64,000 nt of DNA from Obrimoposthia wandeli (Eukaryota), in the NCBI GenBank assembly GCA_977020255.1, contig CDROCS010002105.1:372001-436000 (forward strand), written 5' to 3'. A program made the translations under genes and the position numbers. The notes under the pieces were generated by a model that saw only the letters and a list, made by a program, of their open reading frames with translations, was not told the origin of the DNA and searched no databases. Shown here piece after piece: positions 32,187-42,690 of the stretch (the stretch's first letter is position 1; the number at the start of each line of letters is the position of its first letter).

Positions 32187-33203
32187 CCTGATTACCACTT
32201 AAATTCCGCCAATTGACTACACTTAAAATGAAATAAAAAGTGAGGCGGTGATCATGGCTAAAAATAAAGTCCAATTCCAAAAAAGTATTTCAATACATGC
32301 TTTTATTTCACAACTAGGTACTGAAGAGCAATGTCGAAAACGACTGTTTGATATGCGATGGCCTACTGGTTACCTATGTGAACATTGTGGCTGTGATAAG
32401 TATTGTGAATTGAAATCAAGAAAACTTTATCAATGTAACCAGTGCCATCATCAAGGATCAGTTACGTCTGGCACCTTATTTTCCGCTTCAAAATTGCCAT
32501 TAAACATATGGTTTTTAGCTATTTACCTCATAACTCAAGAGAAAAATGGTATTTCTGCATTAGAGCTGTCTCGCCAGCTTGGCATTTCCTATAACGCGGC
32601 ATGGCGTATGAAGCATAAATTGATGCAAACAATGAAAGAGCGAGATGATGAAACACCATTGAATGGTTACATTCAACTGGACGATGTTTATTGGGGAGGA
32701 GTCCACCGTGGCACCCGAGGGCGTGGAGCCAAAGGAAAACGTCCTTTCGTTGCCGCAGTATCAATGAACGAAGATGGTCACCCAATTAACATGCGATTTA
32801 GTGTTGTAACAGGTTTTAAAACCAAAGAATTAACGCGTTGGGCGAAAGCGAATCTTGTACCTAAATCTCTCGTTATTTCTGATGGTTTGGCTTGCTTTAA
32901 GGGGGTTAAAAAAGCGGATGTTTTTCACCTAGCTATCGTCACTGGCGGCGGTGCTGATTGCGTAGAATTGCCTTACTTTCAATGGGTCAACACAATGATT
33001 AGTAATGTGAAAAATTCAATGCACGGTACTTACCATGCAATAAACAAAAAACATTTACCTCGTTATCTCGGAGAATTCTGTTTTAAGTTCAATAGGCGCT
33101 TCAATCTTGAAAAAATGCTCGAACAGCTCATTTACTCAAGTATCCAGACAGCACCGATGCCTGAGCGGTTACTTAAACTGGCTGAGGCTCGGTGGTAATC
33201 AGG
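32187..33203 (+). mobile_element. Intact IS1595-family insertion sequence (1017 bp)
   Basis: Terminal inverted repeats CCTGATTACCAC / GTGGTAATCAGG; 8-bp target duplication TAAATGTA at 32179-32186 and 33204-33211. Confidence 0.95.
32254..33198 (+). CDS. IS1595-family DDE transposase
   Basis: Zinc ribbon CEHC...YQCNQCHHQ.SVTSGTLF, GISALELSRQLGISYNAAW, IQLDDVYWGG, VISDG, KHLPRYLGEF.FKFNRR. Confidence 0.95.
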   Translation: MAKNKVQFQKSISIHAFISQLGTEEQCRKRLFDMRWPTGYLCEHCGCDKYCELKSRKLYQCNQCHHQGSVTSGTLFSASKLPLNIWFLAIYLITQEKNGISALELSRQLGISYNAAWRMKHKLMQTMKERDDETPLNGYIQLDDVYWGGVHRGTRGRGAKGKRPFVAAVSMNEDGHPINMRFSVVTGFKTKELTRWAKANLVPKSLVISDGLACFKGVKKADVFHLAIVTGGGADCVELPYFQWVNTMISNVKNSMHGTYHAINKKHLPRYLGEFCFKFNRRFNLEKMLEQLIYSSIQTAPMPERLLKLAEARW

Positions 33204-33684
33204 TAAATGTAAGTGCAAATGTAAACATGAACATGTTACAAAAATTAAAAGAAATGTTTGGCAGCGTATTTTTTATAAATCAATATTCAAGTGTAAGGGT
33301 TGTGGTGAATTAATTAAATTATAAATGTCATCATAATAAAGTTTAAAATGAAGTTATATTCTAGGTTGGCTTGCTGATAAACATGCTAGTAACTTATTTC
33401 CTTTACATGTTTAGGTTTCAATCTGACAAGTGAAACAGACTGAAAACAGGCAGTTAGAAGTTTGCTTAGTGTACTGAAAGTTGGGTTTTATTAATTGATA
33501 TCATAAAGTTGTGATGTAAATGACTTGTTTTCATAAAATTAATTGATTTTATTATTGAGTGTTATTGGAATTGATTGTCACAATGTATATTATTCATCAG
33601 TGTATAATAGTGACTAATTTATCTGAGTCTTAGCTTGATATAAGTTCTTATATTTTTTGCTGAAATTAAATATTGGGTGTAAAG

Positions 33685-35334
33685 ATGGAATTAAAAAAAT
33701 ACATTAGTAATGAAGGGAACCTTCTTAAAAAATTAAGTCAAAAATATGACGTCACCACAGATGTTTTAGATCACATTTTAGTCGATAACTTCAAGTTTCA
33801 GGTTCGCTTACCGTTGATTGGTGCATTTAGTTCTGGAAAATCAAGTTTGGTAAATTCGTTGCTGAAAGACCGTATTTTCCCTGTGGAGGTAAACCCTGAA
33901 ACATGTTTGCCTGCAGAAGTGCATTACGGCCTAGAGGAAAATTTAAGTCTTTGTGAGTTATCAGGAGAGAGTAGACCGATAACTCGGCCTCAAATTAAAG
34001 CGCAGGATTATGGGTTAGCGGAAGATGGCAATGTAACAAGGTGGTTGGACGTCGCACTACCAAACCCTATTTTAGCGCAATGTCCGGAATTAGTATTAGT
34101 GGATATGCCTGGCTGGGAGTCAGGAATTGCTCAGCATAGTCATGCTATTGATAATTATGTTCACCGTAGTGGTGCTTATTGTCTGGTTGTTAGTGTAGAT
34201 GATGGTAACTTGCGCGAAAGCCTAAAGCGGGTTTTAGCCGAGCTAAAACTTTTTAATAAGCCAATCATGGTGGTATTGACCAAATGCGATAAGCGCCCTG
34301 AAGAAGATACAGAAGCGGTTGCTAGGCAAATTGTTGCTGAGGTCGAGAGTGTGATTGGGTCGGCACCGTTAGCTGTAGTTAAAGTATCACGCAAGAAAAA
34401 TATAGAAGCTTTTATTTCTGCCGTTCATCAGGTCAACCAATTGTCGAGTGATATTCACCATCAGGCAATCATCAAACCGCTGAAAGCATATATTTCACAG
34501 TTAGAATCCACGTTGAGAGTATTACTCAATGATGACAATATTGAAGTGGAACAAATTGCCGTCGAGCAACAGCAACGCCAGCATGAATTAGAAGTGCTAA
34601 AAGTACAGCTTAATGAAGCAGGGGAACTACTCGACAGTATTGTGCCAACCACTGTTGATCGTGTGCTTGAGTTATTCAGTAATCGCCTAACCGCTCAAGT
34701 CGATAGCTTGGCTCGTGCTGCGATTCACCAAGGTGATATCGAGGGTATTATTGGTTCAACTCAGCGTCTAGCATTTACTGAAGGGCTGGAATTAGAGTTC
34801 AAGCCTCGTATTCGCCAGCAGATCCAATCGATAAGCCCAATCAATGCCGAGGATCCTCAAGGGTTTTCTGTCGAAATGAATTTTAAATCAAGTGGCGAGA
34901 ACAGTATAACCAAAGACATTCTCAGTGATGTTCTTCCGATGCTTATTGGTGTTTTAACCCGTACTCCCATTTTAATCCCCCTTGCTCCTTTGATTACTCG
35001 CCTGATTAAAGGGGTATTTGCAAACAAAGAGAAAGAATTTCAAGCTCGTCAGCACTTGGAAGATGCGAAGCAGTATGTGTTGAGCTCGTTAATCCCAGAT
35101 ATTTGTGCACGATCTCGAAATACGGTTGAAGAAGCACTCTTAAAATCAGTGGCAGAAATTAAGCAACAATTGATGAGCGATACGGAATTACGTGGTGAAC
35201 AGCACCTCGAAGCATTGCGTAAGCTGGCCGTGAACCTTGAACAAAGTCAGCAGCAGCAACGTCAGCTGAAAGATGAGTATCTGGCAGATTTAGATACGTT
35301 ATTAACATTCACAGCTGGGCTGGAGGTTAAATAA
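33685..35334 (+). CDS. Dynamin-like GTPase 1
   Basis: G1 GAFSSGKSS, G2 region PET, G3 DMPG, G4 TKCD, helical C-terminus with hydrophobic paddle (VLPMLIGVLTRTPILIPLAPLI). Confidence 0.85.
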   Translation: MELKKYISNEGNLLKKLSQKYDVTTDVLDHILVDNFKFQVRLPLIGAFSSGKSSLVNSLLKDRIFPVEVNPETCLPAEVHYGLEENLSLCELSGESRPITRPQIKAQDYGLAEDGNVTRWLDVALPNPILAQCPELVLVDMPGWESGIAQHSHAIDNYVHRSGAYCLVVSVDDGNLRESLKRVLAELKLFNKPIMVVLTKCDKRPEEDTEAVARQIVAEVESVIGSAPLAVVKVSRKKNIEAFISAVHQVNQLSSDIHHQAIIKPLKAYISQLESTLRVLLNDDNIEVEQIAVEQQQRQHELEVLKVQLNEAGELLDSIVPTTVDRVLELFSNRLTAQVDSLARAAIHQGDIEGIIGSTQRLAFTEGLELEFKPRIRQQIQSISPINAEDPQGFSVEMNFKSSGENSITKDILSDVLPMLIGVLTRTPILIPLAPLITRLIKGVFANKEKEFQARQHLEDAKQYVLSSLIPDICARSRNTVEEALLKSVAEIKQQLMSDTELRGEQHLEALRKLAVNLEQSQQQQRQLKDEYLADLDTLLTFTAGLEVK

Positions 35335-36887
35335 TGCACCATCAAGATGAGCCTACGGCACTAACTCCTGAGCTATTAGCCCAACGCTATTCGTTACTCT
35401 GTCGGGCGTGTGATGCTGAAGTAAGCCCAAATAGAAATTTGGATATTGCTTTAACGCAGTTGGAAAAGATTATTAGGGAGGATCTGCCAGAATTGGCTCG
35501 GCAAGGTAGTCCAGCGAATGTGGCTGATATTCTGCGGGCATTTGAAGCCGAGCTGGCACGCTTCCGTGATTTCTGCGAATTTCCACTGCTGGCAAGTAAA
35601 TCGGTCGTTGCTGTTGGCGGAGCGTTCAGTGCGGGTAAATCAAGCTTTATTAATCGGTTGATTAAGACTAAATGCCTAGCAACAGAAGTGGATCCAACCA
35701 CATCGTTACCGACTTATGTATTGCGTGGCAAACCGGGGATCATGGCATTAAATACCTACAATCGTGCAGTTTCAATTACTCCAGAAGAGTTTGCAACTCT
35801 GACGCACGATGAAAAGCAGTTGTATGGCAGTCAAGTGAGTTGTCTTTTACAGTCGGCATTTGTCACTTTACCTGAATTTTCTTGGCAAAACCTGACATTG
35901 CTGGACACCCCTGGCTATACAAAGTCCGAAGATGAAGGCCGTGGTACTCGTACCGATGCGAACTTGGCTAAAGCTCAGCTCAATAGTGCTAATTATATTA
36001 TTTGGGCGATGTCAGCGGAGTCGGGCACGATATCGGAAGAAGACTTAACCTTTCTGGCGTCATTGAAACGTGATATTCCCAAGTTGGTTATAGTGACTCG
36101 TGCGGATAAGCGTGATCAGGAAGATATCGACAATGTCGTAGCTTTAGTTTGCTATACCTTGGCAAACCGTGGGATTGAGGTACTGGATGTGGTGCCTTAC
36201 TCCAACCGAAAGAAGCGCTTGTATCCTATAGAATCTGTGACTGACTATATGGATAGCTGGAATTTATCGCAGCATCCTTTGCAGTTTGCTCAAGAGTTTA
36301 AACGGCAATTCTTGCACTATCAGCGCTATATTGATGAGCAAAACCGGATTGCGAACCTGCGCTTGCATCGGTTAAACCGCATTTTAGCCTTGAGTGAAGA
36401 CTCCGATTTGACCAAAGAAGCCGATGCGCTTAAAAACTTGGCACAAAAAGAGTTACACCAGCTTGAACGGCTAGGGGAAAAGCTTACTGGCAACAGTGTA
36501 CAGTTCTTTTCTCAGCTTAAGTATATCGGTGATATGGCAGGTGTTGCCTTGCCGGAACCGAGTGCCGTTGAATTGATGGATTTCGAGGAGAGTAATCTGC
36601 TTGATATGCTGCGAAGCCTTCGTGAGCAGCTGGAATTGGATGAACCCGCTGAGCCTCAATTGGAAACGTTATTATCAGCTCCGATAACAGAATCCGCCTT
36701 AGCTAAAATATTACGACGTGATTTTCAAACAGTTCCGATCTTGGAGACGCTGTTAGATGAGCCTTGTTTAGTAAGCCTCCCAGCGATATTACGTGAAAAA
36801 CGTCCGGTTCAAGATGTATTGGATTTGTTGGCTCTTGGCAATCCAACCAATGTGGATGTTGATGAAGTTGAAGGAGTACGGTTATGA
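35334..36887 (+). CDS. Dynamin-like GTPase 2
   Basis: G1 GAFSAGKSS, PTT, G3 DTPG, G4 TRAD, VVPYS; C-terminal tail with a 28-aa internal repeat. Confidence 0.85.
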   Translation: MHHQDEPTALTPELLAQRYSLLCRACDAEVSPNRNLDIALTQLEKIIREDLPELARQGSPANVADILRAFEAELARFRDFCEFPLLASKSVVAVGGAFSAGKSSFINRLIKTKCLATEVDPTTSLPTYVLRGKPGIMALNTYNRAVSITPEEFATLTHDEKQLYGSQVSCLLQSAFVTLPEFSWQNLTLLDTPGYTKSEDEGRGTRTDANLAKAQLNSANYIIWAMSAESGTISEEDLTFLASLKRDIPKLVIVTRADKRDQEDIDNVVALVCYTLANRGIEVLDVVPYSNRKKRLYPIESVTDYMDSWNLSQHPLQFAQEFKRQFLHYQRYIDEQNRIANLRLHRLNRILALSEDSDLTKEADALKNLAQKELHQLERLGEKLTGNSVQFFSQLKYIGDMAGVALPEPSAVELMDFEESNLLDMLRSLREQLELDEPAEPQLETLLSAPITESALAKILRRDFQTVPILETLLDEPCLVSLPAILREKRPVQDVLDLLALGNPTNVDVDEVEGVRL

Positions 36888-37675
36888 AAATAAACACATT
36901 GCATCAGTTAATTGATGAAGCCAAATTAGAATTGTATCCGCTAGATGCACACATATTATCCGGTCAATCTGAGTGGGATCGTGAACAATACGCAATTTTG
37001 CTTGCTGCAGTTTTGATCGGTGATGGCACTGTATCTGAAGCACAATGCCGGGTGTTTGGATTATTACTGGCCGCATTACATTTACCTACTGAGCCAGCAA
37101 GATATTTTGCTCAGGTGGGCCAAGTTGATAAGTCGACAGTTATTGAATTTGTTAATAGATATAAAAGTCAGGATGTCGCCAAGGCATTTGTATTTGATGC
37201 GGCGGTTTTAGAAAAATTATCAGAAAACAGTTCGTCTGAATCAAAACAGTTCCTTTTCGAAATTATCCAGTTGTTAGATGTTAATTTTAATGAACTGGTC
37301 GTTTTTTACAAACTACTTATCACGGAGGAAATGGAAATAAATCATAGTGATAAGTTTGTAATTAAATCAGATGTTTATGAAGTAATAGAGAGGGTTAATA
37401 AAAGGGGGGGTATTTTTACAAATGCATTTTTTTTTGCATTAAATGATATGGCCAATCAAACTTGCAAAATAAATAAAGATATGAGGCTGCTATATGAGAT
37501 CGAAGATAATACCCTTGTTTACCACTCAACTGTTGAAAACATTGGAACTGTTCAATGGGGTGAAAGTACGTACCAATCGCAGCGAGTGAAGGTCTGTTAT
37601 GGCATTTCATATTTACCTTCGCTTCATCACTGGAAGCCAGTATTTCAAGATATCATAGAAGGAAGTTGCGCATGA
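36884..37675 (+). CDS. Hypothetical protein with TerB-like N-terminal domain
   Basis: YAILLAAVLIGDGTVSEAQ..VFGLLL resembles the TerB (A)DG.vs..E motif; ATGA overlap with the upstream gene; AT-rich C-terminal half. Confidence 0.55.
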   Translation: MKINTLHQLIDEAKLELYPLDAHILSGQSEWDREQYAILLAAVLIGDGTVSEAQCRVFGLLLAALHLPTEPARYFAQVGQVDKSTVIEFVNRYKSQDVAKAFVFDAAVLEKLSENSSSESKQFLFEIIQLLDVNFNELVVFYKLLITEEMEINHSDKFVIKSDVYEVIERVNKRGGIFTNAFFFALNDMANQTCKINKDMRLLYEIEDNTLVYHSTVENIGTVQWGESTYQSQRVKVCYGISYLPSLHHWKPVFQDIIEGSCA

Positions 37676-39057
37676 TATCGTTACTAGGAGATTTTGATAG
37701 TCTGCGCCAAGAGCGAGAACCACTACAACCACATGCAGCCATCATGCTTGATGAACCAAAAAAGAAACAATATGCAGCCTTAGTCACTATGTTTATGCTT
37801 GCTGGTGGTCAAGTTAATGCAAAGCAGGAACGTCTGTTAGGGTTATGGCTTAAGGCGCTCTCTCTTAATACCTCGTTAGCTGATGTACTGGAAAGCGCAC
37901 AGCAAATGAATATTGATGCTTTACGCAATGCGATAGCCGTAATCGAGCAGCATGATTTGGTGGAACATTGCTTAGTTGATATTCTAGTCTTTATCCGTAT
38001 TGGCGGGGCGAGCTCAGACACCATCACAGCTTTACTCGCAGAGTGGGTGACTTTGCTTAAGATATCTAAAGAGAAAGTGTCTGATGCTGTAATTTTTGTA
38101 TCTCGTATACTCGGTGCTACCGACATCTTCGCTTTCAGCTTGGAATTCTGTCCAACTCAGTATGGCGTATGGTTAGAGTTCTTTGCCACACCGATAACTC
38201 AGGCTGATTTGGAAAATGGTATTGAGGGCGGTGCTTGGTTAGTGACTAGTGATATCACGGTCGAGAAAGAAGTGACTATCAATAATGCTGAACTCTGGTT
38301 TGTTGGCAATACCACTCTGGCCTTTAATGGGGCTGGTAATACTGTAATCAAAAAAACTTTATTGCGTAGGCCTCTGGTGACGGTCAGTCATCCGAATTTA
38401 GTTTTAATATTAGAAGACTCTTCGGTAGAAGGTGTTTACCAGCATAACATGCTTGTCACGGCAATGTTGGTAGAAGCGGCTGATCGTTTTGTGTCGCGAC
38501 GTTGTCATTACCAGACGGTAGATGCTCGTACATATTACTTTGGTGCAGAAGTGTCATTTGAATTTGAAGGTGGATCATTTTCATGCTGTGGTAATAAGGC
38601 GAAGAATGGCGGAGCGATCGCATCTCGTACGGGGACGAATATCACTAATAAATTGTCCGGCGTAAAGTTTAAAAACTGTGTGGCTAATATTGGTGCTGTT
38701 ATCTATATGCACTACGCGGCGGAAAAAACCTTCTATCAATGTGAAATAATCAATTGTCATTCTGATGTTGATTTTGGTAAATATAATGCTGGTTCAATTT
38801 ACCTTCTTGATGCAAATAGTGGTTTTATGATCGCTTCGACTGTTATTAATAGCAATATTTCATTACGTGATACATGGCATCATTCAGATTCTGTGTTTAT
38901 TGTTGATTCTTTTTTAAAAAGTTGCATGATAAATTTTTCAAGAGAAGATGGTAATAGAAATGAATTTTTATGTGATAAAACAAGAGACATTAGCGGTGCT
39001 ACCAATCAGCAAGTAAAAAAACATTCTTCATCCCTGCCAAATAGCTTGAGTTTTTAA
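37672..39057 (+). CDS. TerB-like N-terminal domain + right-handed beta-helix (pectin-lyase-like) C-terminal domain
   Basis: N-terminus paralogous to 36884-37675; C-terminal repeats such as NGGAIA, FKNCVANIGAVIY, IINCHS; ATGA overlap at 37672. Confidence 0.55.
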   Translation: MISLLGDFDSLRQEREPLQPHAAIMLDEPKKKQYAALVTMFMLAGGQVNAKQERLLGLWLKALSLNTSLADVLESAQQMNIDALRNAIAVIEQHDLVEHCLVDILVFIRIGGASSDTITALLAEWVTLLKISKEKVSDAVIFVSRILGATDIFAFSLEFCPTQYGVWLEFFATPITQADLENGIEGGAWLVTSDITVEKEVTINNAELWFVGNTTLAFNGAGNTVIKKTLLRRPLVTVSHPNLVLILEDSSVEGVYQHNMLVTAMLVEAADRFVSRRCHYQTVDARTYYFGAEVSFEFEGGSFSCCGNKAKNGGAIASRTGTNITNKLSGVKFKNCVANIGAVIYMHYAAEKTFYQCEIINCHSDVDFGKYNAGSIYLLDANSGFMIASTVINSNISLRDTWHHSDSVFIVDSFLKSCMINFSREDGNRNEFLCDKTRDISGATNQQVKKHSSSLPNSLSF

Positions 39058-39060
39058 ACT

Positions 39061-41193
39061 ATGACGATTTTATTTCTAGAAGATATTAGCCAGTTTAAGC
39101 CGTGGCAAAGTGAGTTGCCTGAAGTGAATGGGCTATTCGAAATTCAAAATGACTTTAAACAAAAGTTAGCACGCTGGAAAGAGCAAGAACAGTGCCTCAG
39201 CATCGGGGTGATGGGGCAAGTGAAGGCGGGGAAAAGTAGCTTTCTTAATGCCTTGTTGTTTGATGGTAAGCCCATTTTACCAGCAGCGGCAACGCCCAAA
39301 ACTGCGAATCTGACCCGAATTAGTTACGGTGAACAATTTGCGTTGCGGGTGGAATATTATAGTCAGAATGAATGGCAGCTGATTGTAAAAGAGGCACAGG
39401 GTAAGGGTGAGCATACCGAAGCGAAAGTGGCTCGAGAATTAGTAAAAATGGCCAGAAAGGTTGGCGATAAACTGGAACAATGCCTAAAGATAGGCGTTGA
39501 AAGATTCCAGGTTGACAATCTGGAATCTTTGCAAGGCGTGTTGAACCAGTACACAGGTAATGATGGCGAGTTCACTCCTTTAGTAAAATGTACCGAAATC
39601 ACACTACCGCTTGAAGAATTGCGTGGCTTGGAAGTGGTAGATACTCCAGGTATGAACGATCCAGTGCAAAGCCGTACCCAAAAAACCCGCGATTATATGG
39701 CAAATTGTGATGTGGTATTTTTCCTGTCTCACAGCAGTAAGTTTTTGGACCAGCCTGATGTTGATCTACTGGCCACACAGCTTCCCGGCAAAGGGGTAAA
39801 GCATATGGTGCTGGTTGCCGTACAGTTTGATTCTGCGATTCTGGATGATGGTTTTAATCGTGACTCACTGGCAGAAACAGAAGCTAACCTAAAGAAGCGT
39901 TTGGGGGGGAATGCTCAGAAACAATTGATGGAATTGGTAAAGCGAAAGCAGGATAGTGGTAATAAGGCTGCAGCAGATTTGTTGAACAACCTGACAGTAC
40001 CGATTTTTGCCAGTACTTTTGCCCACGGATTTGCCCATTGGCCGCAAAGTCGATGGTCAAAAAATATGAAACATGTACACGCTGAATTACTCGAACTGGC
40101 AGAAGATGAATGGGATGATACGATTACGCATGAAGACTGGCTTCGAATTGCCAACTTCAGTGAGTTAACACAAGCCTATAAATATGCTCGAGAAAATAGA
40201 ATAACGCTGCTGAAAGCCCAACATGACAGTGTGATTCCTGATGCGGTATTGCAATATGAACAACAGTTAACCTTGATAGCGAAGAGTGCACAAGCCCGCG
40301 TTAAACATTTGCAAACTGAGGATGTTGCTTCTCTTGAGCTGAAAAAAGCCAATTGCGAAAAGCATATTGCTGAATTATCTGTTCGGCTGTCTCGAGTTCT
40401 GAATGCTGCGCAGCGTCAGGCACAGCAGATGTCAGATGATCTGATGCAGCAGATTCGTCAGGATAAAGAGAGCTATAGCCACCTTAATGAAAAAACAGGC
40501 ACGACAACCCGTACCCGTTCACATGAAGTGAGTGATTCAACGTGGTATAAACCCTGGTCGTGGGGGAGTACACGTACTGTCTACTCTACTTATAGTGAGA
40601 ACTATCAGTATTTGAGCAGTGCAGATGCCGCAGAGCAGATACGCCTGTTTGGTAAAAATAGTGCACGACAAGTAACGGCGCGATTTGCAGAGTTGATCGC
40701 CCCGAAGCAGCTAAAACTGGAACTGAAAAAAGCACTGTTAGATGGGCTTGATACACGTAGCGAGCAGTTTGATCCTATGCAGTTTAGGACAACCCTTGAA
40801 CAGTCATTGGTAAGTTTGCAAATGCCACGTTTGGAAGTTGATCTGGGAGATACCACCTCTCTGATTGGCGGTAGTTTTAGTGGAGATGTACAAGGTGCTG
40901 ATGAGATGAAACGTCTGCGTAGTTCGTTAAATCAGGCTCTACGAGCAATAATGGAGCGTTTTGAAAGCTGTTTTCAAGAACAGTTCCAGGTTGTTATGCA
41001 GCAGCTAGAGTTAGTTGAGCAGACTTTAACAGAACGTCTTATCAAGGATGTAAAAGCTGAATTGAACACGCTTCAGCAGAAGGTGGAAAATAAAGAAGCT
41101 GAGTTAAAATACTATAATTCGTTATTAGTATTAACTTCTGAATCGTTATCATCGACTACAGAGATAAAGGGGAAAATAGCAGAAACAGCATAA
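39061..41193 (+). CDS. Dynamin-like GTPase 3
   Basis: G1 GQVKAGKSSFLN, LP.AATPKTANLT, G3 DTPGMND, long helical C-terminus with DSTWYKPWSWG. Confidence 0.85.
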   Translation: MTILFLEDISQFKPWQSELPEVNGLFEIQNDFKQKLARWKEQEQCLSIGVMGQVKAGKSSFLNALLFDGKPILPAAATPKTANLTRISYGEQFALRVEYYSQNEWQLIVKEAQGKGEHTEAKVARELVKMARKVGDKLEQCLKIGVERFQVDNLESLQGVLNQYTGNDGEFTPLVKCTEITLPLEELRGLEVVDTPGMNDPVQSRTQKTRDYMANCDVVFFLSHSSKFLDQPDVDLLATQLPGKGVKHMVLVAVQFDSAILDDGFNRDSLAETEANLKKRLGGNAQKQLMELVKRKQDSGNKAAADLLNNLTVPIFASTFAHGFAHWPQSRWSKNMKHVHAELLELAEDEWDDTITHEDWLRIANFSELTQAYKYARENRITLLKAQHDSVIPDAVLQYEQQLTLIAKSAQARVKHLQTEDVASLELKKANCEKHIAELSVRLSRVLNAAQRQAQQMSDDLMQQIRQDKESYSHLNEKTGTTTRTRSHEVSDSTWYKPWSWGSTRTVYSTYSENYQYLSSADAAEQIRLFGKNSARQVTARFAELIAPKQLKLELKKALLDGLDTRSEQFDPMQFRTTLEQSLVSLQMPRLEVDLGDTTSLIGGSFSGDVQGADEMKRLRSSLNQALRAIMERFESCFQEQFQVVMQQLELVEQTLTERLIKDVKAELNTLQQKVENKEAELKYYNSLLVLTSESLSSTTEIKGKIAETA

Positions 41194-41254
41194 CAACTGT
41201 TTCTTATTGAGTGGTAAGTATTGGGCGATAGTTATCTTCAGTGCTTATCATTTT

Positions 41255-41279
41255 AAAAAAGCCCTGCGAACAGGGCTTT
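41255..41279. terminator. Intrinsic terminator between the dynamin operon and menB
   Basis: AAAAAA-GCCCTG-CGAA-CAGGGC-TTT. Confidence 0.75.
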
Positions 41280-41302
41280 AAAGTCAATAAATCAGCCTGG
41301 TA

Positions 41303-42199
41303 TTAGTAATGCCAAGGAAAGCGGCTGAAGTCTTGATCTCGTTTTTCCAAAAAGGCATCGCGGCCTTCTTGTGCTTCTTCGGTGCCATAGGCTAGGCGAG
41401 TTGCTTCACCTGCAAATAGTTGCTGTCCAACTAAGCCATCGTCAGCCATGTTGAAACCGTATTTAAGCATACGCATCGCAGTGGGTGATTTGCTATTGAT
41501 CTCTTTAGCCCAAACAAGCGCTTCATTTTCAAGTTCAAAGTGGTCAATAACCTTATTGACCATACCCATGTCATAGGCTTCTTGCGCACTGTAGTTGAAA
41601 CCGCAGAAGAATATTTCACGGGCACGTTTTTGGCCAATCATCTTGGCAAGGTAAGCCGAGCCGTAGCCTGAATCAAATGATGCTACATCAGGATCTGTCT
41701 GCTTGAATACAGCGTGTTCTTTTGATGCAAGAGTCAAGTCACACACTACGTGCAAGCTATGACCGCCACCTACCGCCCAGCCTGGTACTACAGCAATGAC
41801 GACTTTCGGCATAAAGCGAATCATACGCTGAACTTCAAGGATATGTAGGCGACCCATGCGAGCAACATCCGCTTTGCCAGCTTCTGCACCTTCGTATTTA
41901 TATCCGTCTTTGCCTCGGATACGTTGGTCACCACCGGAAGAAAACGACCATTGGCCTTTCTTCGACGGACCATTACCGGTTAGCAGTACACAGCCAACAT
42001 CAGACGATTGGCGAGCATGATCAAGGGCATTGAAAAGCTCATCTACAGTTTTTGGACGAAATGCATTCAAACAATCAGGGCGGCTTATTGCAATACGAAC
42101 CGTACCGTGCGCTTTAGCGCGATGGTAGGTGATGTCTTCAAAATCAAAGCCAGGGACTTCATCCCACAATTCAGGATTAAAAATTTCTTTGCTGGTCAT
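41303..42199 (-). CDS. menB: 1,4-dihydroxy-2-naphthoyl-CoA synthase
   Basis: DITYHR, NAFRPKTVDEL, FSSGGDQ, RLHILEVQR.IRFMPK, AVGGGHSLHVVCDLT, SFDSGYGS, EGRDAFLEKR; start ATG 42199 (ORF track 42286). Confidence 0.95.
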   Translation of the reverse strand: MTSKEIFNPELWDEVPGFDFEDITYHRAKAHGTVRIAISRPDCLNAFRPKTVDELFNALDHARQSSDVGCVLLTGNGPSKKGQWSFSSGGDQRIRGKDGYKYEGAEAGKADVARMGRLHILEVQRMIRFMPKVVIAVVPGWAVGGGHSLHVVCDLTLASKEHAVFKQTDPDVASFDSGYGSAYLAKMIGQKRAREIFFCGFNYSAQEAYDMGMVNKVIDHFELENEALVWAKEINSKSPTAMRMLKYGFNMADDGLVGQQLFAGEATRLAYGTEEAQEGRDAFLEKRDQDFSRFPWHY

Positions 42200-42690
42200 G
42201 ATGACGGTTGCCTCATTGGTTAGATGAGCTAAGGCTATGGCGTTAGCGCTAAATGTCAATGATTTATGAAGAATTGTGACAATCATCGTAGGGATTATTT
42301 GGTGCTGGCTTATTAATCAAGCAGATCTCGCGAGTTCATTCGACCAAAAAGAAAGACTTTAATGTAGGTCCGTTCTCGATCATACACTGATGAATTTCCG
42401 ATTTAGCAGGCAACGGTGTGTATATATAAAGTACCAAGTCATTAATGGTGTACTTGATTATGACTTGGGGTAATTGACGAGGGTGTTTGTACCCACGTTT
42501 TTCTGTTTTATATACAGTCATATTATATTTTTTGAATTTTCGATATTCGATATCAACATTCCGCACGTTTTCACTTGGATGTTGACTGTTAAGTCTTTAG
42601 TATCAGTTGGTTGTATGAGATTGGTGAAATGTGATGGATATTATTAAATATGCGTACTATAGAAATGTTATGTGTGAAAAAAGGTGAATC

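Follow-up and report, generated by a model that had tools for sequence, protein, structure and literature searches.

Bacterial defences built on dynamin-like GTPases and those that contain TerB proteins have been described separately, with the two-dynamin system Eleos on one side and the TerB systems Shango and Bunzi on the other (Millman et al., 10.1101/2022.05.11.491447); Eleos has also been associated with WYL regulators (PMC13622015). Here, we describe an operon in which the two meet: a candidate for dynamin-based defence that includes accessory proteins of the TerB type. It lies in a 64,000-nucleotide (nt) stretch (hereafter the window, contig CDROCS010002105.1, positions 372001-436000) of an assembly obtained from Obrimoposthia wandeli, and consists of five tightly packed plus-strand genes in the order DLP1-DLP2-P3-P4-DLP3. 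The DLPs are dynamin-like GTPases, and P3 and P4 are a short and a long protein with a common TerB-like N-terminal head. In our judgement the chances are even that P3 and P4 are the sensor or adaptor subunits of an undescribed dynamin-based defence system with exchangeable recognition tips. This is based on their related heads, their unrelated tails, and two short AT-rich blocks, one near the C-terminus of each protein, that are strongly diverged between otherwise near-identical operons.

The closest described systems each resemble this operon in part. As in Eleos/LeoABC, several consecutive dynamin-like GTPases lie in a defence island, and DLP1 is distantly LeoA-like; however, Eleos has two genes and no TerB-like genes, whereas here and in related operons three GTPases enclose one to three TerB-like adaptors. 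The PADLOC LeoA model matches DLP1 (2.3e-10) and DLP2 (5.2e-6) over the P-loop region only and DLP3 not at all, while the DLP1 orthologue of a related locus (L098) is matched over nearly its full length (6.1e-18). Most GTPases of these operons have no PADLOC match, and the LeoA/LeoBC gene pair by which Eleos is recognised was not found in them. With the TerB proteins of Shango and Bunzi, P3 and P4 share the character of a non-enzymatic TerB-type component adjoining nucleoside triphosphatases (NTPases) in defence islands, but the partners in Shango are an ATPase and a helicase rather than dynamin-like GTPases, and neither the P3/P4 pair nor its relatives matched the PADLOC Shango and Bunzi models (E <= 1 or 1e-3). 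Neither protein was matched by any Pfam, NCBIfam or PADLOC model, and no curated family in these collections covers them. Dynamin operons that contain TerB-like genes were not described in any paper found by our literature search, although a 2012 paper on Ter systems (Anantharaman et al.) could hold an earlier mention.

Related heads and differing tails

The N-termini of P3 and P4 are paralogous, as a first-pass annotation of this DNA had claimed from the letters alone: BLASTP aligns them ungapped from residue 1 with 34 identities in 134 residues (25%, E 2e-9). A profile built from the two heads matched only the P3 and P4 open reading frames (ORFs) when searched against the whole assembly (1.35 Gb, 6912 contigs). 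The annotation had also called these heads TerB-like, and this identification held. On the basis of models, we regard both heads as a divergent TerB-fold domain of a distinct subtype, because structural matches, profile matches to the Protein Data Bank (PDB) and the Pfam scores of relatives concur. For the AlphaFold2 (AF2) model of P3, VIA-align found 2h5n_A (Z 8.8, 118 residues, 3.6 Å) and 2ou3_B (Z 8.7, 134 residues, 3.9 Å), the latter labelled in its PDB entry as a "tellurite resistance protein of COG3793"; these were the sole representative chains with Z >= 5, the next reaching 4.8. Foldseek ranked the same two entries at the top for P3 and gave the P4 head a probability of 1.00 to 2ou3 and 0.99 to 2h5n, so that the two N-termini are also structurally alike in prediction. 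Among PDB sequences, a nine-sequence head profile likewise had 2h5n and 2ou3 as its best, though weak, matches, and a two-sequence profile returned noise only. Pfam TerB (PF05099) does not match P3 or P4 even at E <= 1, which places them below its gathering score of 24.4 bits, but heads of the same family in four related loci (L099, L100, L103 and L112) exceed that cut-off with 31.6, 41.1, 33.5, 27.0 and 35.5 bits. At E <= 0.1 the model is matched by three of 68 long and three of 64 short relatives.

While the heads share the helical fold and two-repeat layout of the TerB family, they differ from it at the DG(x)5E motif. Aligned to 2ou3 and to TerB proteins that pass the Pfam cut-off, P3 retains D47-G48 but has Q54 at the canonical Glu position, followed by R56, and P4 reads GG...Q...R, likewise with Gln in place of Glu. 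The second acidic motif of this type is degenerate in both, so that neither protein carries the two motifs expected of TerB. The first-pass annotation had seen this Gln (in SEAQ and NAKQ) and suggested that metal binding may have been lost; the substitution and the altered acidic motif are real, but simple decay does not fit, since Gln is itself the family signature. Across 165 family heads, H23 is kept in 163, Y36 in 164, Q54 in 124 (Glu in 22), R56 in 152, D105 in 164 and R111 in 143, giving a subtype signature of PL..H, Y, SExQxRL, D and R. The Gln thus stands beside a near-invariant Arg and additional invariant His, Tyr and Asp residues that set the subtype apart from TerB, and the site looks like an altered binding site that was afterwards conserved rather than one that has decayed.

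Beyond the heads, no BLASTP or phmmer link was found between the P3 and P4 tails, and the C-termini are unrelated, in agreement with the first-pass annotation. The P3 tail forms a small alpha/beta domain in the AF2 model, for which we found no recognisable relative and which nothing in the ESM Atlas matched. The tail of P4, as also anticipated, is predicted to be a right-handed parallel beta-helix with GGAI-type repeats, which are present in the family consensus as well. Its AF2 model shows a regular series of short strands (aa 188-450), and VIA-align gives Z 20-21 to 7chu, 5w6f, 4nk8, 7eea and 5gkd (tailspikes, PL6 lyases and AlgG), with 237-270 residues aligned at 6-15% sequence identity. 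An ESM Atlas search with P4 scored 0.90-0.92 to Beta_helix clusters. Pfam Beta_helix (PF13229) leaves P4 itself unmatched but matches 14 of 68 P4 homologues (best E 4.7e-9). The fold and its GGAI-type coils are thus like those of phage tailspikes, PL6 alginate lyases, AlgG and NosD, but the helix in P4 is fused to a TerB-like head, has no identified catalytic residues and, because no signal peptide is predicted, would be cytoplasmic. No transmembrane segment or signal peptide is predicted in either protein, and both appear to be soluble bacterial proteins.

With clustering at 50% identity, an exhaustive profile search recovered 327 family clusters at E <= 1e-3, 174 of them with E <= 1e-10, and the lengths of the family members are bimodal (250-350 and 450-525 aa). 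The long tails belong to a single homologous beta-helix family of about 87 representatives with 20-29% identity to P4; one family member of the long length class carries a WD40 propeller. Among the short tails, more than 20 sequence clusters can be told apart, many of them unclassified; Lcl_C (11 of 64), leucine-rich repeat (LRR) and biotinyl-lipoyl-like (barrel-sandwich) domains are among them. A tree built from the heads groups the short forms, whatever their tails, in one starred clade, and P4 lies within starred sets made up almost wholly of beta-helix forms. P3 and P4 are therefore ancient paralogues. The short paralogue shows a constant head with a variable tail at the deep level of the family, and the annotation's picture of a conserved head with a variable tip survives in that respect. 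Its claim that the beta-helix was recently acquired does not: conserved with the head across about 87 distant relatives, the beta-helix is an old and stable partner.

Two AT-rich blocks between near-identical operons

The hand-counted GC content of the first-pass annotation (46, 29, 41 and 29% in four 180-nt samples) proved exact, with 0.461 at 36961-37140, 0.294 at 37321-37500, 0.411 at 37741-37920 and 0.294 at 38821-39000. A metagenomic contig, SWCB01004366.1 (L104), which is the sole close orthologous operon compared at the DNA level, carries the same five genes with 93-100% nucleotide identity outside two sharply bounded blocks (Table 1). These two blocks are the AT-rich regions of the annotation, and all ten of the 180-nt intervals of the operon with GC <= 0.30 fall inside them. 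The orthologues are thus not uniformly conserved, and their divergence is concentrated in AT-rich C-terminal segments.

Synonymous (dS) and non-synonymous (dN) divergence between the window and L104, estimated by the Nei-Gojobori method, is low in P3 aa 1-123 (dS 0.12, dN 0.036) and P4 aa 1-370 (dS 0.12, dN 0.026) and high in P3 aa 124-215 (dS 3.4, dN 0.52) and P4 aa 371-461 (dS 1.15, dN 0.285); within block 1, dS runs from 1.9 to 3.4 and GC from 0.27 to 0.32. Block dS (1.15-3.4, saturated) is therefore at least ten-fold above that of the flanks (about 0.1), and dN/dS stays below 1 (0.15-0.75), from which the blocks appear to be old alleles imported by recombination, or long-maintained polymorphisms, rather than recent bursts of point mutation. 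Recent positive selection as the source of the divergence was rejected on the same two grounds, and the diversifying selection suggested by the first-pass annotation found no support in either block.

When four or five close orthologues are aligned as proteins, the breakpoints are nested, and the core of each variable segment differs in every sequence: P3 aa 150-200, with four alleles among four close orthologues, and P4 aa 420-460. Both compared alleles of the blocks are AT-rich. GC at third codon positions (GC3) is 0.19 in the P4 tip of the window (0.19-0.24 across both alleles) against 0.38 (about 0.4) in the rest of P4, a composition that would fit donors like the ~30% GC operons found in other Vibrionaceae. 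The boundaries of the blocks are not those of the domains. Block 1 starts within the final helices of the head region, from where it spans most of the P3 tail, and block 2 is confined to the final ~90 aa of the P4 beta-helix. The AT-rich regions are therefore sub-segments and not, as the annotation had them, the C-terminal modules themselves, and the exchanged units are sub-domain cassettes rather than whole modules.

Allelic specificity cassettes exchanged by recombination are familiar from the target-recognition domains of HsdS and from the tips of phage tail fibres. The blocks resemble these in being sharply bounded, deeply diverged segments of genes that are otherwise near-identical, and in their nested breakpoints and unusual composition, but differ in that neither the vicinity nor the rest of the assembly yielded inverted repeats, an invertase, silent cassettes or a reverse transcriptase. 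There are no direct or inverted repeats of at least 14 nt within 36800-39200, and neither an invertase nor a reverse transcriptase is present among the neighbours (GTPases, IS1595 and menB), for which reasons a diversity-generating retroelement or shufflon was rejected. The head-profile search of the assembly returned no further head copies and no silent cassettes, and silent cassettes elsewhere in the genome were likewise rejected.

Operon setting, related loci and distribution

Table 1. Features of the five-gene operon and its surroundings in the window (aa, amino acids; coordinates in the window unless a locus is named), with the gene order of the related loci (pLDDT, predicted local distance difference test; pTM, predicted template modelling score).
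Feature	Coordinates	Strand	Description and evidence
IS1595-family insertion	32187-33203 (transposase 32248-33198)	+	Pfam DDE_Tnp_IS1595 4e-31; ~470 bp upstream of DLP1
DLP1	33673-35334	+	Dynamin-like GTPase, distantly LeoA-like; Pfam Dynamin_N 6.9e-18
DLP2	35334-36887	+	Second dynamin-like GTPase; Pfam Dynamin_N 4.3e-17; kept in related operons
P3	36884-37675	+	Short TerB-like paralogue, 263 aa; AF2 pLDDT 84.1
P3 head	36884-37318	+	TerB-fold domain, aa 1-145; VIA-align; signature H23, Y36, Q54, R56, D105
Block 1	37254-37703	+	P3 aa ~124-263 (core aa 150-200), reaching the first P4 codons; 38-79% identity to L104, flanks 93-98%
P4	37672-39057	+	Long TerB-like paralogue, 461 aa from ATG 37672; AF2 pLDDT 91.4, pTM 0.90
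P4 head	37672-38115	+	TerB-fold domain, aa 1-148; BLASTP to P3 E 2e-9; Foldseek to TerB entries
P4 beta-helix	38182-39036	+	Predicted right-handed parallel beta-helix, aa 171-455, GGAI-type coils; AF2, VIA-align, ESM Atlas
Block 2	38784-39053	+	P4 aa ~371-461, last beta-helix coils and C-terminal cap; 64-74% identity to L104, flanks 92-100%
DLP3	39061-41193	+	Third dynamin-like GTPase, 710 aa, last operon gene; Pfam Dynamin_N 2.9e-20
L097			DLP-DLP-short-long-DLP
L098			WYL-DLP-DLP-long-DLP
L099	patatin::DLP at 5565-9230 of L099		WYL-DLP-patatin::DLP-TerB-DLP
L100			WYL-DLP-DLP(1207 aa)-TerB-TerB-TerB-DLP
L103			DLP-DLP-short-long-DLP
L104			Same five genes; near-identical copy of the window operon
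L111	patatin::DLP homologue at 11625-15248 of L111		DLP-patatin::DLP homologue-TerB-TerB-DLP
L112	9042-15129 of L112		WYL-TerB(417 aa)-263 aa-HerA-like ATPase; no dynamin

The DNA of the contig comes from a Photobacterium, because menB in the window shares 96% identity with its Photobacterium indicum counterpart, and the contig, as Photobacterium DNA within a host assembly of eukaryotic size, belongs to a symbiont or contaminant of the sequenced host. The operon is translationally coupled: the start of DLP2 overlaps the stop of DLP1, and ATGA start/stop overlaps join DLP2 to P3 and P3 to P4. The mechanical ORF call places the P4 start at TTG 37666, but ATG 37672 is most likely the true one, since it gives an ATGA overlap with the stop codon of P3 and agrees with the N-termini of close orthologues, which begin MISL... 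In DLP1, a single strongly hydrophobic, proline-containing segment at aa 420-442 (34930-35000; VLPMLIGVLTRTPILIPLAPLIT; KD19 1.78) is likely a membrane-insertion paddle, and no comparable segment was found in DLP2, DLP3, P3 or P4.

The operon has features of a defence island around it, namely a WYL gene, a DUF4145 gene and the IS1595 insertion. The insertion is recent, because L104, otherwise 97-99% identical, shows a BLASTN alignment gap at exactly the IS1595 coordinates, and it may affect expression of the operon. On the other side of the operon in the window (41254-42268), DLP3 is directly adjoined by menB on the minus strand (41303-42286); in L104 (13583-17929), DLP3 is followed by about 4.2 kb of unrelated DNA and then by an 87-nt stretch that matches the 5' end of menB at 86% identity. 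The boundary of the island thus differs between the window strain and L104.

Gene context was compared at eight other loci, mostly from Vibrionaceae and their relatives. In seven of the eight (L112 being the other), one to three TerB-like genes lie between dynamin-like GTPases, and a DLP3 homologue immediately follows the TerB-like genes in L097-L100, L103 and L111, as well as in the near-identical copy L104. A WYL regulator lies directly upstream of the operon in L098-L100. L099 encodes a protein of about 1200 aa in which a patatin-like phospholipase (Pfam 3.3e-27) is fused to a dynamin-like GTPase, and L111 has a full-length homologue of it at 58% identity; to judge from its sequence, this fusion would be an explicit lipid-attacking effector within the same operon family. 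In L112, a WYL gene, a protein with a TerB-like head and a tail, a 263-aa ORF and a 1019-aa HerA-like (DUF87) ATPase adjoin a MoxR-vWA system. The TerB-like protein of this locus is 47% identical to that of the patatin-dynamin operon, and the TerB-like adaptor appears to be common to different NTPase systems.

The system is rare and patchy, being present in four of 401 Vibrionaceae genomes, three of 401 genomes sampled from the order and one of 401 sampled from the class. It was not found in the four closest Photobacterium species searched, and tblastn searches of plasmids and phages with P4 and with a sister TerB protein gave no match. A search of genome contigs for related loci with P4 alone as query also found nothing.

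Possible role and rival explanations

In light of these findings, what might P3 and P4 do? We infer that the TerB-fold heads dock the proteins to the GTPase machinery, or else bind a common small ligand, and that the tails would serve as recognition domains, namely the beta-helix in P4 and the small alpha/beta domain in P3, the latter being replaced in other members by lectin-like Lcl_C, LRR, barrel-sandwich or other domains. The tails may sense a cue derived from the invader or from the envelope, which the heads would relay to the three GTPases, and these in turn could remodel, seal or damage the membrane. The patatin phospholipase of the sister operons would be the overt membrane-damaging effector. 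Such a mechanism would resemble the Eleos/Leo and DynA dynamin defences. Within the species, the AT-rich tips occur as deeply diverged alleles, which recombination in the conserved flanks probably transfers between otherwise near-identical operons. The "phage range" that the first-pass annotation had in mind is meaningful in this defence sense only. P3 and P4 as phage receptor-binding proteins were rejected, since they are soluble bacterial proteins within an operon of dynamin-like GTPases.

Several observations weigh against the sensor proposal. No catalytic or ligand-binding site was identified in the P4 beta-helix, and positive selection is not demonstrated in either block, because dN/dS is below 1 and dS is saturated. 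The blocks could be poorly structured, as they are the lowest-confidence parts of the AF2 models (pLDDT 49-67 in the P4 block). Of the eight other loci compared, one, L112, is without dynamins. In addition, no PADLOC model matches P3 or P4, and the GTPases of the window match LeoA partially at most.

The low model confidence, which falls exactly on the two blocks, also favours an explanation that we consider rather unlikely: that the AT-rich blocks are weakly constrained and partly disordered tails, imported neutrally from lower-GC homologous operons, with P3 and P4 acting as scaffolds of a GTPase complex that have no role in specificity. It draws further support from a dN/dS that stays under 1, coming close to 0.4-0.75 in P3 aa 151-210, from a P4-tip GC3 that resembles the ~30% GC homologous operons of other Vibrionaceae, and from the lack of either repeats or dedicated diversifying machinery in our searches. 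However, in all observed alleles the reading frame of both blocks is intact and their length similar, and the P4 tip is still under constraint, since its alleles align without gaps and dN is about a quarter of dS. Neutral import would also have to account for two independent blocks in the same relative place, the C-terminal tip, of both paralogues, and for the family-wide swapping of the short paralogue's tail for known binding domains (Lcl_C, LRR), which suggests a function. Alternatively, P3 and P4 could be regulators of the GTPases (brakes, or antitoxin-like), the variable segments co-evolving with cognate GTPase surfaces and not with an invader. Genes of the P3/P4 type are always placed between GTPase genes and translationally coupled to them, their copy number (one to three) varies along with the type of GTPase, and the first 90 codons of P4 likewise have an elevated dS, as to a moderate degree do DLP2 and DLP3 (about 0.1, against 0.018 in DLP1). 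Yet the flanking GTPases are 96-99% identical in protein sequence between the two strains whose tips differ by 30-60%, with no matching change visible in a partner, and L112 pairs a homologous protein of TerB-like head and tail with an ATPase that is not a dynamin. We consider this explanation improbable.

We give little credence to the idea that the operon is a housekeeping or stress module for membrane repair (tellurite-type or envelope stress), with a metal or a metabolite as the signal for its TerB-like domains, even though TerB was originally described in tellurite and stress resistance (cited in 10.1101/2022.05.11.491447) and DynA of Bacillus subtilis is described in PMC12998192 as a housekeeping membrane-repair dynamin. 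Against it stand the rare and patchy occurrence of the system, also wanting in the closest Photobacterium species searched, its position in a variable island adjoining an insertion sequence, the WYL regulators and patatin fusion among its relatives, and the replacement of the canonical acidic TerB motif.

Returning to P3 and P4 as sensor or adaptor subunits, a wider generalisation is possible, although we put it forward as doubtful. The Q/R-type TerB-like head might mark an undescribed modular sensor-adaptor family, in which interchangeable recognition modules of beta-helix, lectin-like, LRR, WD40 and other kinds are coupled to NTPase effectors (dynamin-like GTPases with or without patatin, or a HerA-like ATPase) under WYL control and directed against invaders. 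Short tip cassettes, exchanged by recombination, would then reshuffle the recognition specificity within species.

We know of no account of how infection is recognised by Eleos, DynA and other defences based on dynamins. Should sensing fall to the TerB-like proteins, these operons would give a tractable handle on that recognition: the docking head is constant, the tails carry different domains in different species, and short cassettes vary between near-identical strains. Natural pairs of alleles already exist for specificity swaps. In turn, the TerB subtype defined here, whose conserved site is a different one (H, Y, Q, R and D), may help to explain the role of TerB in Shango, Bunzi and other systems.

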